Assembly: GCF_000142905.1 (NCBI RefSeq)
Contig: NW_013657640.1
Location: forward strand, 123,208-187,207
DNA length: 64,000 bases
Origin: Thecamonas trahens ATCC 50062
Lineage: Eukaryota > Protista > Apusomonadida
Direction of reading: 5' to 3'
Shown here: piece by piece, positions 23,775 through 30,497 of the stretch
Layout of the letters: every line of letters begins with the position of its first letter
Position numbering within the stretch: position 1 is the stretch's first letter
Notes under the pieces: model-generated
What the model saw: only the letters and a program-made list of their open reading frames with translations
What the model was told of the DNA's origin: nothing
The model's database searches: none
Made by a program: the position numbers and the translations under genes

Positions 23775-24188
23775 TATTTCATAGTTTCCAACTGCAAACA
23801 CTCTTCCGCCGTCAGACAGGCCGCGCGGCCCAGCCAGCTGCCATCGATCCGGGGCCAATCGGTCGTGCCGCTCCGCCACGACGGCCAGCCAGCCAAGCCA
23901 ACTAGTCAGCCAGCCAGCCACCCCCCACCACGGGCGCACCCACTCCCACGGGCACCCCACTCCACCCTTCCCACCCCCCACCCCCCACCCCCCACCCCCC
24001 CACCCCCACGCCAAAACCGCCCCCTCCACCCCACCCCCCCCACCCAGGTACGCCCTGCCGCCTCCCGCTGCCCGTTGCCGGTGCCTGCCTGCGCCCCTTC
24101 CCCGAAGCCTCCAACGAATTTTTGCCGGTGGCAGACCACCCCTCTCACACCCGTCCACCGCCCCCTCCCCCTCCCCCCCACGCACAGC

Positions 24189-26444
24189 ATGGCGGACCAG
24201 ACACTGGGCATCTCGTTTGCGGCTGCAGAGCCCCTGGATGACTCGGACTCGGACGAAGGCGTCGTGGCGCATGTGGCTGACGAGGACGACTCGTCGTCGG
24301 ACCCGCTGTCGTCCGACGACGACGCTACCGAGTCGGACGACGGCGACGGCGGTGATGGCCGCGACGGCGACGGGAGCTCAGCAGTGCTCGGCATCTCGTT
24401 CTCGTCGGCCGCTGGTGGCGACGGCGACGGCGACGACGACGGTGGCGACGACGACGACGACGACGGGCTGCCGGACTCGGACGCCGACGATTCGGACGAG
24501 GAGCTGTCGGACGATTCGTACGACGAGGACGGCCTGGTGCTTGTGCTCAAGTACGGGGCGCACGGGCTGACCGGGCGGCGCAAGACGATGGAGGACGCGC
24601 ACTTTGCAGCGGTGCAGGCGTCGCAAAAACTAGAGACGGCCGAGACGCAGGGCGGCCCTGCGGTGGGCTTTTTCTCAGTCTTTGACGGCCACGGCGGCGA
24701 CGCGTGCGCGCTGTATCTCTCACAGAACATGTTCCCCGCAGTGTTGGAGACGATGCCCGAGCTGGCGATCCGGACCAAGGAGGTTGACCCGGAGAGCCTC
24801 CCGTCGCAGGCCGAGGAGCTGCAGGCGATGGAGACCAGTCTCCGCGAAGCGTACGCGCTCGCCGAGTCGCGGTTCATCTCGCTTGCCGAGAGCAAAAACG
24901 TTGATTCAGGTGCGACAGCCGTCTCTGCCCTCATTCATGGCAACAAGCTCGTGGTTGCCAACGTTGGCGACTCTGAGGCTGTGCTCTCGCGTGATGGCAT
25001 GCCTGTCAACCTGACAGTCATCCACAACCCGGCCAAGAACCCGGCCGAGGAGGAGCGAATTGTGGCTGCCGGCGGGCGGGTGTACAAGAAGCGGGTGGCG
25101 CTACCGTCGGTCCCGCCGCACCTGTGCAACATTGCAGTCTCGCGGGCGTTTGGCGATATCCTGTTCAAAAACACGCCTGACGGGACAGCGTCGGGGCTGA
25201 CGGCGGATCCGGACGCAGCCACGTGGCTCATTGAGCCGCAGGATGAGTTTCTCATTTTGGCATGCGATGGGGTGTGGGACGTGATGACACACGAGGAGGC
25301 TGTCGACGAGGTGTCATCGAGCCTTGCGGCGTCGCAGTACGACCCGCAGGCTGCTGTTGAGTGCCTGGTCAAGGCGGCGTACGCGCGCGGCTCGACCGAC
25401 AACATCACTGCGCTGGTGGTGCTCTTCGAGTTTGTGCCCGAGGAGGACCTTCTTGAGCTGCTGGAGGACGACCCGAGCCCGCCGCTGGCGCTGGATGTCA
25501 ACGGCGAGCCCGCGAGTACCGAGTTTGAAGGCAAGGTGAGCGAGCTGCAGGCGCTCGGTAACGGGTTCTCACCGGTCGCGCCGGTCCACCAGACCGGGAC
25601 TATCAAGCTTATGCCGCGGACGGCGGCGGGCCCGTCGACGCCGACCGCAGGCGGATCGGGCATTACCTTTGCGGCCACGGGAGCAGGCTCGGACTCTGAC
25701 GACGGTGTCTCGCCGTTTGGCGTCGACTCGGACGAGTCGGGCTCTGACGACGAGTGGGACGAGAAGGCGCTGTGGCCGGGCAAGCTCGCGGCTTACACCG
25801 AAGAGACACCACTCAACGGTGCGCAGCGCAACGTGCCGGGCACCAAGCGCGACGAACTGTTTGCATGGAAGGCCGCGCCGCTCGAGGAGCAGACCGGCTC
25901 GCTTGAAGTCCAGCAGTACCTGCAGCAGCTGATCCGGAGCGACCCCGCAGACGTGGACAAGATTGTGGAGACGCCCGAGGGCGTGTCGTCGGTGGTGTGG
26001 CAGTACGAGCACCTGCGCCAGCTGACACTCGAGCTCTCGCATCTGGCAGTCATGCTGGAAGAGTGCGGGTGCTCGCCCGAGTCGTGCCCCAAGATGAAGG
26101 CGACTCAAGAGTGGATGTTCCTCTGCGCAGCCCACAAGGAGCCGCAGGAGTGCTCCGCCATCGACTACATGTGCCACACGCTCGAGGGCGCCGCCGCGCT
26201 GCTCAACTCGCAAAAGTACTTCCCCTCGCGCATCAACCTCAAGGAGGCCGACGCCAAGCCGAACCTCCAGTCGGTCGCCCGCCGCCTCTATCGTATCTGC
26301 GCCCACGCCTTCTTTGCCCATAACGACGCCTTTGAGGAGTTTGAAGCCGAGACGCACACTACCGAGCGCGCCGTCAAGCTCGCTGCCCGCTACAAGCTTG
26401 TTGGCCGCAAGATGCGCATCATCCCGCCTGTCGAGGAGTGGTAA
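24189..26444 (+). CDS. PP2C (PPM) phosphatase fused to C-terminal MOB4/phocein domain
   Basis: PP2C: GRR-x-x-MED, VFDGHGG, ANVGDS, VSRAFGD, LACDGVWD, DNIT. MOB4: RNVPGTK, VQQYLQQLIR, VWQYEHLRQ, WMFLCAAH, AIDY-x-x-HTL, KYFPSR, RRLYRI. One uninterrupted frame. Confidence 0.9.
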   Translation: MADQTLGISFAAAEPLDDSDSDEGVVAHVADEDDSSSDPLSSDDDATESDDGDGGDGRDGDGSSAVLGISFSSAAGGDGDGDDDGGDDDDDDGLPDSDADDSDEELSDDSYDEDGLVLVLKYGAHGLTGRRKTMEDAHFAAVQASQKLETAETQGGPAVGFFSVFDGHGGDACALYLSQNMFPAVLETMPELAIRTKEVDPESLPSQAEELQAMETSLREAYALAESRFISLAESKNVDSGATAVSALIHGNKLVVANVGDSEAVLSRDGMPVNLTVIHNPAKNPAEEERIVAAGGRVYKKRVALPSVPPHLCNIAVSRAFGDILFKNTPDGTASGLTADPDAATWLIEPQDEFLILACDGVWDVMTHEEAVDEVSSSLAASQYDPQAAVECLVKAAYARGSTDNITALVVLFEFVPEEDLLELLEDDPSPPLALDVNGEPASTEFEGKVSELQALGNGFSPVAPVHQTGTIKLMPRTAAGPSTPTAGGSGITFAATGAGSDSDDGVSPFGVDSDESGSDDEWDEKALWPGKLAAYTEETPLNGAQRNVPGTKRDELFAWKAAPLEEQTGSLEVQQYLQQLIRSDPADVDKIVETPEGVSSVVWQYEHLRQLTLELSHLAVMLEECGCSPESCPKMKATQEWMFLCAAHKEPQECSAIDYMCHTLEGAAALLNSQKYFPSRINLKEADAKPNLQSVARRLYRICAHAFFAHNDAFEEFEAETHTTERAVKLAARYKLVGRKMRIIPPVEEW

Positions 26445-26539: not shown

Positions 26540-27726
26540 TCAAAGAAAGTAATCGGGCACCTGCTTGGCCTGGCCCGACGGCACCTCACGGCGGTCCTCG
26601 GGCGCAGCGGAGAAGACGTTGAACTCGCGGTTGAGCGAGGCGTCGATCTCGCAGATGGACGCCACGTTGCCGCAGCGGTAGCAGTAGTTGGGCGCGGACC
26701 AGACGGTGGCCAGCAAGCCGTCAAAGTGAATCTGGTAGCCTTCCATGCACAGCTGGTGGGCGCGAAGGACAGTGGAGAGGCCGTTGACGTGCAGGAAACG
26801 CTCGACGGTGTCTTTGCCGAACAGATGGCCGGCGTTGCGCTGTGAGAGGTTGAATCCGTCACGGTCGGACGGATCCGACCACAGCAGGTCAGCAAAGACG
26901 CCCTCGGACGGCGGCTCGCGGAAGCGGTCGATGAGCTTGATCTGGTCAACCGAGAGCACCGCCGGCGAGAGCCCACCGTGGACACAGAAGATCTTGCCGG
27001 CAATGATGGCCGAGAGCGGGAGGTAGTCAAAGACCTCGCAAAAGTACGACCAAACGTCGGCCGACCCGTACTTTTGCACGACCTCTTTGTAGAACCCGTA
27101 CACTTGTGTAATCTGCCGCGACTCGTGGTTGCCGCGCAGCAGCGTGATGCGGTCCGGCCACCGGAGTTTGAGGCACGTCAGCAGCGTGATCGTCTCCAGG
27201 TTAAAGTGCCCGCGGTCCACGTAGTCGCCCAGAAACAGGTATCGCGTATCGGGGCACTCGCCGCCGATCTGGAAGATCTCCAGCAGATCGTAGAACTGAC
27301 TGCAGTATCCAGCCGCGATACCGTTACCGTGTTGTTGTGTCGCACCCCGGCTGTCTGTCAGTGGCGAGCCGTCTCTTCTACCCGCCCCCCCTCCCCCCCT
27401 CCCCTCCCCTCTGCGCCCTACCTACCAACCTTCTGCCCACCGCTATCCCACGACAATGCCCACGGCCACCGCCCCCCATCCCCCTCCCCCCCCCCCTCGC
27501 CCCTCCCTCCCTCCCCCTCCCCCCCCCCCCCCCCCCCCCCCACCCCTCCCCCACCCTCAACCTACCCATGGACGTCACCCACAACAGTCACCGGCGCGTC
27601 GACCTCGCACACGTTCGACTCGTCCAGAAGGACGTCAATGACCCGGGTGCAGATGTCCTTGATCGTTGCCTGCGACAGCAGCTCGCACCGCTTGAGCTTC
27701 TCCAGGCACTTGTCCACGTCGTCCAT
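26540..27726 (-). CDS. PPG1: PP2A-family Ser/Thr phosphatase catalytic subunit, Ppg1-like; complement(join(26540..27299,27566..27726))
   Basis: GDVHG|QFYD across a GT-AG intron; [24 protein letters not shown]-terminal [16 protein letters not shown]-x-IDRFRE and AHQLC-x-EGYQI-x-FDGL resemble yeast Ppg1 more than PP2A/PP4/PP6. Confidence 0.85.
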
Positions 27727-27869: not shown

Positions 27870-30497
27870 CTACTGACCCTGCTCCGAGACGGCAAGCGCA
27901 GAGCCGACAAGGCCGTTGGCGGTGTTGAACAGGTTGACCGGCGAGTTGCCGTCGGTGAGGAGGACAGACGAAAGGCCGAGCGAGCCCAGGAGCTTGGCCT
28001 GCATCTCGGGCCCGGCCTTGGCAATGTCCTTGATGACCTCGGGCGTGATGGCCTCGATCATGGCCTTGAACTTGCCGGTCTCGATCTCGGTCAGCTGGGC
28101 CTTCTTGTCGAGCTCGAGCTTGTTGAGTGCGGCGACGTGGGTGAGCTCGGCGGCGTAGTGGGCCTGCAGCCGCTTGAGCTCAAAGGCAGCCTCGACGTCT
28201 GCGGCGTCTGCACGGAGCTGGGCCTGCTCGACACTGGCCTCGCACTCGATGACGGTGGTGGTGGCCTGGGCCTTGGCCTCGGCCTTGGCCTTGCCCGTCG
28301 TCTTGATCGACTCGCACTCGGCCTGCAGCCGGAGAAGCTCGATCTTGGCAGCCTCGGAGAGGCACGAGTCGCGGATGCGGAGCTGCTCGAGCTCGCCAAG
28401 CGCGTCCTGCTCCTCTCGCTTGGCGACGTTGCGCGCCCGCGCTTCGAGCGCGTCGGTGGTGATCTCGATGGCGAGCGAGACCGACTTTTGCAGCGAGTCC
28501 CGCGTCCGCTGGTCCACGGGGTCAACGTTCTGGATGTCGACGTTGGTGATGACAAGGCCGTTGGCCGGAAAGACCCGCTCGTCGCAGACCGAGCCATTGT
28601 CGTCGAGGCCAAAGACGGCTGCGCGGATGATACGTGCCGAGTTGGCGTGGAACTCCTGGAACGGAATCGAAGCCACCGTGCCGCGGATTGACGAGCCGAG
28701 CGCCTTGCACGCGTCGCCCACAAAGTCGGCAACCGAGAAGATCTTGCGGGTCGAATCCTCCGTCGACCGGTCGACACGGAACTCCCAGTTGTACCCGAGC
28801 TGAAGCGAGAGGCGTGCATGGTCCGACGTCTCCACCACGATGACGTCGATCATAAAGTCCGGGCCAAGGTAGAGGAGCAGCGACTTGATGGCGTTCGACT
28901 GCTTCGGCCGCCCGCCCGAGAGCGAGAAGACCGTGAGGTGCTCATTCGGCTGGAGAAGCACCAGCTCTGGGCCAAACACCACCCGGGCATCCTTGGTCTT
29001 GTAGTCAAAGATCTGGACCGCTGCGTTGTGCGGGACACGGTAGGTGACAACCCGCCACTTTTCGCGCCGCTGCATGCCTGTCAGGCCAGCCGCCCGCGAG
29101 CCGGTCGACGCAAGGTTGAGGATCGTCGACTGCAGGCCCGGCGTGCGGCTTGCAGACGAGGAGAACAGCACGTTTGAGCCGGCAGCAAGCTCGACCGGGG
29201 TGTCGGTGAACGGCGTCTCACCGTTGATGAGCGCCTCCATGTCGGCAGGCAGCTCCTTCTCCCACAGCTCCTCGTCGGCCTGCAGCATGTACGACGCGCC
29301 GATCTCGGCGCGCACCTTGCCGGTCGTCATGTTGCGGACGTACACGCCCTCGTTCTTGTCGAGCGGAATGAGCCACCGCTGCGCCGCCACACTGCATTGC
29401 GGTGCTGGGTAGTAGTCGCGCGGCCCAAAGACCATCCACCGCTCACCCGGCTCCCGCGCCACGCCCTCGTCGTCCACGTACGCCTCGACACACCGCAGCA
29501 CTAGCGCGTCCTGCTTCGACAGCAGGTGCGCCGTCTGCTTGCCGGCAAGCAGCCGCTCGCCGGGCTGCAGGAAGAACGTCTTGGGCCCTCGGACCATGGT
29601 CTTGGTTCCCAGCACGTTCTTGCCGGTCGACGCGTCCACAGGATCCACAATGACGCAGTAGTCGGTGTTTGAGAGCGAGATCGCCGTCACAGGCGTCACC
29701 AGCTGCTCAAAGACCCCGAGCATGTGCGTCGGCGCCTCGGCAAGCGTCACCAGCCACTCGTCGCCGACCTTGCGCTCGATGCCGTAGACATCGGTGAAGG
29801 CTTGCGTTGCGCGCAGGTGAAGGCCCGTCGTCTCGGTCAGGACATGCAGCTCCTGCACCTCGACAAGCTCCTCCGTTACCCGGCACAGGTATCGCCCCGG
29901 CTGCCGCACAATCCACTCGGAGCCAGCAAGCCGCGCCGTTCCATCCGGCTCGGTAAAGTCCTCCGTCGCCCGCAGCCGCAGCGCCTGGGTCTCGAGCACC
30001 ACTACAGAGTGCACCTCCTCCAGCACCGTCACCACCCGCGACGGCAGATACGTCCGCGGGCCCTTGACCAGCCACTGCTCGCCCGCAGCACGCGTCACCC
30101 CACCCTCGTCCTTCACCTCGCGCTCCGCACGCACCCGCAGCGCAGCGCCGTCCTCAATCACGCGCAGCGGCGTCACGCCCAGCACAAGTGCCTCGCCCGG
30201 GTACAGCGGGAACGGGTCCGGAAAGTCGGCCGCAAGCCGCACCTCCTCGTCACCCCACACGCACACGTAAACCCCGTGCTCGTCAATCACAGGCTGCCCG
30301 GCGTCATCACGCTCCACAGGATTGGCCACCACGCAGTACGACGCCGGCGGCAGGACAATCATCGCCAGCGGGCCATCCACCACGGTCTCATGTGCCTTCT
30401 TGGTGAACGTCGCTGGGCCAACCACCAGCCGCTGCACATTCGTGTTGTTGTCCTCCACCGTCACATACGAATACGGCCGGATGCGAATGAGCGACAC
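27870..30497 (-). CDS. MVP: Major vault protein (5' exon or start unresolved)
   Basis: Vault repeats ([10 protein letters not shown]-x-EWLV, FFLQPGE); shoulder LGPDFM-x-D...[16 protein letters not shown]; cap helix SLQKSV-x-LAIEITT; C-terminal GPEMQAKLL...[13 protein letters not shown]-x-GL. Confidence 0.96.

Follow-up and report, generated by a model that had tools for sequence, protein, structure and literature searches.

Can a MOB protein, a member of a family regarded as non-catalytic adaptors, be made as one polypeptide with a protein phosphatase? The question is raised by a gene of the protist Thecamonas trahens ATCC 50062, located in a 64,000-nucleotide stretch of DNA (hereafter the window) on contig C40 of a 28.7 Mb assembly of 131 contigs. 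The window is eukaryotic, has a GC content of ~64% and contains spliceosomal introns. An open reading frame (ORF) listing gives a single open frame at 23865-26444 on the forward strand, with its first ATG at 24189 and no stop until 26442. It encodes a PP2C (PPM) phosphatase domain followed by a MOB4/phocein module in a product of 751 aa, with a predicted mass of ~80 kDa. We are highly confident that this fusion is a real single gene product. The layout of the gene is as follows, where P0002 is a 740-aa orthologue from marine metagenomes, AF2 is AlphaFold2 and pLDDT is its predicted local distance difference test score.

24189..26444, + strand: whole PP2C-MOB4 gene; 751 codons plus stop; no intron required; P0002 (740 aa) is collinear over aa 5-751
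24189..24524, + strand: acidic N-terminal region, probably disordered, aa 1-112, with two GISF motifs; AF2 pLDDT mostly <50
24534..25439, + strand: PP2C (PPM) catalytic domain, aa 116-417; Pfam PF00481, 185 bits; aligns with PPM1B
25440..25556, + strand: PP2C C-terminal extension, aa 418-456, predicted helix-strand-helix; AF2 pLDDT ~66-72; partly conserved in P0002
25557..25778, + strand: tether, probably disordered, aa 457-530; AF2 pLDDT <50 in both models
25779..26441, + strand: full-length MOB4/phocein module, aa 531-751; aligns with human MOB4; zinc site and phosphate-binding triad

The frame is also open upstream of the ATG (23865-24188, + strand), for 108 proline-rich codons with a GC content at codon positions 1, 2 and 3 (GC1/2/3) of 0.70/0.67/0.75. 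Because it lacks a codon-position GC pattern, this flat stretch is probably 5' untranslated region and not coding. The start Met of P0002 is equivalent to the ATG at 24189.

Domain content of the fusion protein

The first-pass annotation, made from the DNA letters alone, had proposed an in-frame fusion of an intact PP2C to a complete MOB4 that includes the RNxPGTK motif. Pfam and structure alignments place both domains in one stop-free ORF and bear this out, and the coordinates first given for the two domains were off by no more than a few codons. Aligning the full-length protein jointly with homologues of the PP2C-only and MOB4-only kinds placed the C-terminal parts of the PP2Cs wrongly in the MOB region; that alignment was dropped, and the two halves were aligned separately instead (alignments A3 and A4). 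They were also modelled separately with AlphaFold2, using ~40 homologues each. The models give two confident folds linked by low-confidence sequence that is probably disordered. At the N-terminus, pLDDT is <50 in segments 1-38, 40-80, 101-103 and 106-112, and the blocks covering 81-100 average 53.

The PP2C match spans aa 121-406 (nt ~24549-25406) and covers positions 2-255 of the 255-position Pfam profile, with a score of 185 bits against a cut-off of 20.3. The PP2C half aligns with PPM1B (2p8e; E 4e-30) and with PPM1A, with the MED, DGHGG, GDS, DGVWD and DN motifs in register. Residues D166, G167, H168, G170, D261, D360 and G361 are invariant among 44 PP2C homologues, E135, D136, D404 and N405 are near-invariant, and all are present in the fusion. 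Modelled pLDDT over aa 116-417 is mostly >90, dipping to 63-68 in three 10-residue blocks, and strand blocks alternate with helices as expected of a PP2C fold, as read from the model and not from a fold search. On these residues and alignments, the catalytic centre looks competent.

Like PPM1A and PPM1B, the PP2C half therefore has a complete fold with all metal-binding motifs and a short helical C-terminal extension, of which the LDVNGE stretch is an example of conservation in P0002. It differs in its acidic, GISF-containing N-terminus, in the C-terminal MOB4 module, and in being only ~40-46% identical to any stand-alone PP2C, paralogues from its own genome included. Of the at least 15 PP2C-related loci in the genome, the closest paralogue shares 46% identity and is no nearer than PP2Cs of other organisms; by this comparison the PP2C half did not arise through recent duplication. 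The nearest named cluster member to it is ILKAP-like. To our knowledge, PPM phosphatases are targeted through other appended domains or through separate partners, and never through a MOB.

The C-terminal module gives a Mob1_phocein (PF03637) match at aa 588-741, scoring 112.7 bits where the cut-off is 27. From the RN(V)PGTK motif onwards it aligns to residues 11-213 of the 225 of human MOB4 (7k36_H), with 225 bits and E 9.5e-66, compared to ~41 bits (E 1.7e-9) for Mob1 proteins. By sequence, the module is a class IV MOB (MOB4/phocein) of essentially full length. The MOB fold is modelled with pLDDT of ~75-85 over about aa 533-562 and >90 from about aa 563. Its zinc site (C-x4-C plus H-x4-H; C628, C633, H706 and H711) is aligned with that of human MOB4 and is invariant or near-invariant in 40 MOB4s (columns C216, C221, H294 and H299 of alignment A3). 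The same holds for the basic triad R698, R699 and R702, which lies in R-R-L-Y-R and is aligned to human R-R-I-Y-R. These three residues correspond to R161, R162 and R165 of human MOB4; when those are mutated, MST1 and MST2 are no longer pulled down in a phospho-dependent manner (PMC5461540). The phosphate-binding pocket of the module thus looks competent as judged by its residues.

This is the only MOB4 of the genome, a point on which the first-pass annotation had advised a check. The MOBs on contigs C14 and C3 are only 28-29% identical to it, and a further MOB locus on C75 gave no match to the MOB4 query. On C14 (C14:334877-338377), the Mob1-type gene has a masked run of N immediately upstream. 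The single copy, the zinc site, the phosphate triad and the alignment from RNxPGTK to the C-terminus are all shared with human MOB4 (7k36 chain H, 5yf4). What differs is that ~530 extra residues, including a catalytic PP2C, precede the MOB fold. A single domain and a length of 210-240 aa are general features of MOBs (PMC7096357), in line with the first-pass statement that they normally stand alone. The 751-aa fusion with its N-terminal PP2C departs from this rule, and that departure is the novelty, not a ground to doubt the MOB homology.

Rarity and conservation of the architecture

The whole protein was compared by phmmer with 1.84 billion representative proteins (50% clusters of ~15 billion). 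P0002 scored 949 bits, and the next score, 222 bits, opened a series of single-domain proteins only. P0002 was also the only other protein with both Pfam domains in a word-index search that used the MOB region as query and considered long candidates only. Thirteen phmmer matches were listed with two matching stretches, and among the ten of these scanned with Pfam (P0015, P0048 and P0143 were unscanned) none had both domains, all being PP2C-only or MOB-only. PP2C joined to MOB4 was thus found only in P0002; PP2C joined to a MOB1-, MOB2- or MOB3-type module is not specifically excluded by the phmmer search, in which summed scores of such proteins would not stand out. JGI metagenome contigs, scanned with an alignment of the two sequences, yielded no additional fusion; all loci returned were PP2C-only, with 29-37% identity. 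In full-text literature searches, which also covered PP2C together with STRIPAK (the complex of striatin-interacting phosphatase and kinase), no description of a PP2C-MOB fusion turned up. The architecture had been suspected in the first pass to be undescribed, and with one other sequence found it is also very rare. We conclude that PP2C-MOB4 combines known families in a new domain architecture, which is so far known only from the Thecamonas genome and from a single uncultured marine relative.

Other MOB4 fusions are on record. Database entries join MOB4 to RecA, SPX, eIF3/WD40 or GAPDH (P0006, P0008, P0011 and P0012; nematode, Rhizopus, Aphanomyces and chytrid records), mostly as single records, and are probably merged models of neighbouring genes. 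Because such merged models are common among database MOB4 fusions, a conserved, intron-free ORF matters here.

P0002 is encoded on two contigs, L007 and L008, which belong to separate marine-metagenome assemblies; the source of one is Tara Oceans PRJEB4352. The ORF is uninterrupted in both, and four nucleotide differences within the gene leave an identical protein. P0002 and the window protein are collinear from residue 5 to the last residue, with 65% identity. By the Nei-Gojobori method, the proportions of synonymous (pS) and nonsynonymous (pN) differences between the two genes are 0.63 and 0.21 in the PP2C region, 0.50 and 0.17 in the MOB4 region, and 0.80 and 0.365 in the linker, defined as aa 413-544. 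Synonymous sites are saturated between the two species (pS 0.50-0.82).

The linker itself aligns in 131 of its 132 codons, with 53% aa identity to P0002. Its GC1/2/3 of 0.69/0.50/0.80 matches the pattern of the domains, and the tether within it (aa 457-530) has 0.64/0.61/0.80. When the 132-codon linker was shuffled by mononucleotides, only 3% of shuffles were free of in-frame stops for the window and 2% for the orthologue. The other five frames of the linker contain 1, 5, 1, 1 and 6 stops in the window and 0, 4, 1, 1 and 6 in the orthologue. By these two measures, the open frame is not due to chance. Since frame, length, periodicity and aa motifs are kept over saturated divergence, the linker is coding sequence and not an intergenic spacer, and the comparison of the two genes indicates that the fusion is selectively maintained across two species.

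Short motifs are among the features kept in the otherwise low-confidence regions. GI(S/T)F motifs occur in the window protein at aa 7-10 (24207-24218), 68-71 (24390-24401) and 491-494 (25659-25670), and after each come small residues and then acidic ones. Their positions are kept in both species, with four copies in P0002, and the motif is absent from 163 other PP2C/MOB4 homologues, bar one chance match in P0012. The tether holds a T-G-T-I/V-K-L-M-P-R...G-P-S-T-P-T block, the third GI(T/S)F, an acidic run and the start of LWPGK (aa 528-530). Both species keep the first block, as T-G-T-x-K-L-M-P-R...G-P-S-T-P-T, and the L-W-P-G-K block just before the MOB fold.

STRIPAK components and the PP2A-like neighbour

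Canonical STRIPAK is a striatin-PP2A complex with STRIP1, MOB4, SIKE/SLMAP and CCM3-GCKIII kinases. The following genes bear on whether a comparable complex could accommodate the fusion.

26540..27726, - strand: PP2A-like catalytic subunit, convergent neighbour of the fusion gene; exon 1 27726-27566, GT-AG intron 27565-27300, exon 2 27299-26540; DYFL C-terminus
C40:41606-42054: striatin; two exon matches to PF08232; on the contig of the fusion gene, ~80 kb upstream of the window
C29:140553-141335: STRIP (N1221)
C23:191640-191999: SIKE

The fusion gene and the PP2A-like gene are arranged tail to tail, with a stop-to-stop gap of 95 nt in the window and 43 nt on L007. The orthologue on L007 occupies the same convergent position and is 75% identical to the window gene, compared to 61% and 57% for the paralogues. 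This neighbour is the most divergent of three PP2A-type paralogues, scoring 289 bits to human PP2A-C versus 347 and 309 for the others. Within the 3-4 kb available from the relative the convergent pair is conserved, possibly no more so than background synteny would give. On its coding strand, the intron of the PP2A-like gene (27300-27565) is extremely rich in G and includes long poly-G runs. Directly beyond this gene lies a major vault protein gene (27870-30497, - strand; 875-aa ORF).

The likeness to STRIPAK therefore consists of a genome that encodes striatin, STRIP and SIKE, and of a fusion gene placed tail to tail with the gene for a PP2A-like C subunit, in a pairing kept in the relative. 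The difference is that canonical STRIPAK has one phosphatase, PP2A-C, whereas the fusion as MOB4 subunit would bring in another catalytic centre, of the PPM type.

One further ORF touches on the possible partners of the MOB4 module. On contig C39, an ORF beside a CNH domain (L099:1381-2742, - strand; a MAP4K-CNH kinase) has acidic runs followed by the motifs G-T-M-M and S-G-T-F-I. MOBs bind phospho-motifs of similar appearance in MST-type linkers, and on this resemblance the kinase is a possible partner of the MOB4 module.

Proposed function and alternative explanations

MOB4 is a phosphothreonine-recognising adaptor, whose partners include autophosphorylated STE20 kinases, and a member of the STRIPAK core. 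In animals, it binds the phosphorylated linkers of MST/GCK STE20 kinases (PMC5461540; PMC7096357), where GCK denotes germinal centre kinase. Because it does so, and because it is part of the striatin-PP2A complex (MOB4 and PP2A-C are both present in PDB 7k36), we infer that the fusion targets PP2C to phosphorylated kinases or STRIPAK. The reading that we favour, and consider reasonably probable, is that of a real fusion in which a phospho-reader is tethered to an eraser, so that PP2C would be brought to the partners of MOB4 (GCK/MST-type kinases and STRIPAK). The MOB4 module would serve as anchor, docking on phosphorylated kinase linkers, in STRIPAK, or both, and the flexible tether of ~75 residues would keep the Mn/Mg-dependent PP2C within reach of the bound phospho-proteins. 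As candidate targets, the PP2C would have the activation loops of the kinases or the very phosphosites used for docking. The outcome would be a built-in reader-eraser, and possibly a STRIPAK with two kinds of phosphatase. A reader-eraser aimed at GCK/Hippo-type kinases had been suggested in the first-pass annotation, and with its catalytic as well as its phosphate-binding residues intact the protein would suit such a role. What we infer from the gene is that it is expressed as a single polypeptide, that its PP2C is active, that it binds GCK kinases or STRIPAK, and what its substrates are. A predicted complex of the PP2C domain with the MOB4 domain scored 0.00, which we count neither for nor against docking.

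Several observations weigh against this reading. The fusion is carried by two species only, and a query spanning the junction (aa 400-600) brought up neither fragments nor pieces derived from transcripts. Met475 of the tether (in KLMPR) is conserved, and an extra MOB4-only isoform may arise from an internal start there. CCM3 links GCKIII kinases to striatin in animals, and CCM3 (PF06840) was not detected in the genome, which is weak evidence as the search had no positive control. The proposed substrate is a guess by analogy with what MOB4 binds in animals.

The conserved Met also bears on the possibility that the locus yields two separate products, as it would if Met475 were an internal start or marked an internal promoter, if polyadenylation occurred internally, or if the tether were spliced; PP2C and MOB4 would then stand alone. 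MOBs stand alone almost everywhere (PMC7096357) and introns do occur in this genome, yet a PP2C-only message would be without a stop codon, and the linker retains its frame, length, codon periodicity and pN < pS despite saturated synonymous sites. Its short motifs are conserved at the aa level, and an in-frame stop was found in none of three independent assemblies. We consider separate products improbable. The first-pass annotation had named a stop or indel in the linker, and an already widespread architecture, among the findings that would overturn the fusion; the same three assemblies contain neither stop nor indel, and the architecture is rare. Because the assemblies agree, a local assembly error is excluded, and an artefact of any kind (mis-assembly, a sequencing error that erased a stop or frameshift, or a decaying pseudogene) receives almost no credence from us. 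Merged gene models of the RecA, SPX, GAPDH and eIF3 type are common enough to make the suspicion a natural one, but the Thecamonas genome shares the architecture with two metagenome assemblies made from separate samples, purifying selection acts on both domains, whose key residues are all intact, and the four nucleotide differences between L007 and L008 leave the protein unchanged.

A different possibility accepts the fusion as real and has the PP2C act mainly in cis, or on its own complex. A GCK-type kinase would phosphorylate the GI(S/T)F motifs, the MOB4 pocket would bind them, with auto-inhibition or oligomerisation as the result, and the PP2C would reset the state, giving a self-regulating switch. 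The conserved positions of these motifs in both species and their near-absence from the 163 homologues would suit such a switch, as would the presence of G-T-M and S-G-T-F motifs in the linker of the MAP4K-CNH kinase ORF from the same genome. At +1, a hydrophobic residue is favoured in the consensus for MST kinases as well as in that for MOB1 binding (PMC5461540), in agreement with GI(S/T)F. However, MOB1 and MST kinases have a strong preference for Thr (PMC5461540), while Ser is present in six of the seven copies, and the residues at +2 and +3 are small and not hydrophobic. We regard the switch as unlikely, though less so than separate products.

Returning to the tethered reader-eraser, an extended form of it can be offered tentatively, and we hold it to be doubtful. 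The fusion may be the obligate MOB4 subunit of this lineage's STRIPAK, in a holoenzyme that would combine a PPM phosphatase with a dedicated, divergent PP2A-like C subunit, with the GI(S/T)F motifs as phospho-regulated docking sites. Taken as a "Rosetta stone", the fusion would argue that MOB4 presents phospho-substrates in STRIPAK for dephosphorylation, and that PP2C enzymes may cooperate with STRIPAK or MOB4 elsewhere. The role of MOB4 inside STRIPAK has been described as an open question (PMC7096357). The practical weight of the fusion is limited by its narrow distribution in two protists. Nevertheless, a selected covalent link between MOB4 and a phosphatase is independent evolutionary evidence that the MOB4 pocket serves the dephosphorylation of bound proteins, and the fusion suggests that PPM phosphatases are functionally linked to the STRIPAK/Hippo-type kinase module, which is testable in model organisms.

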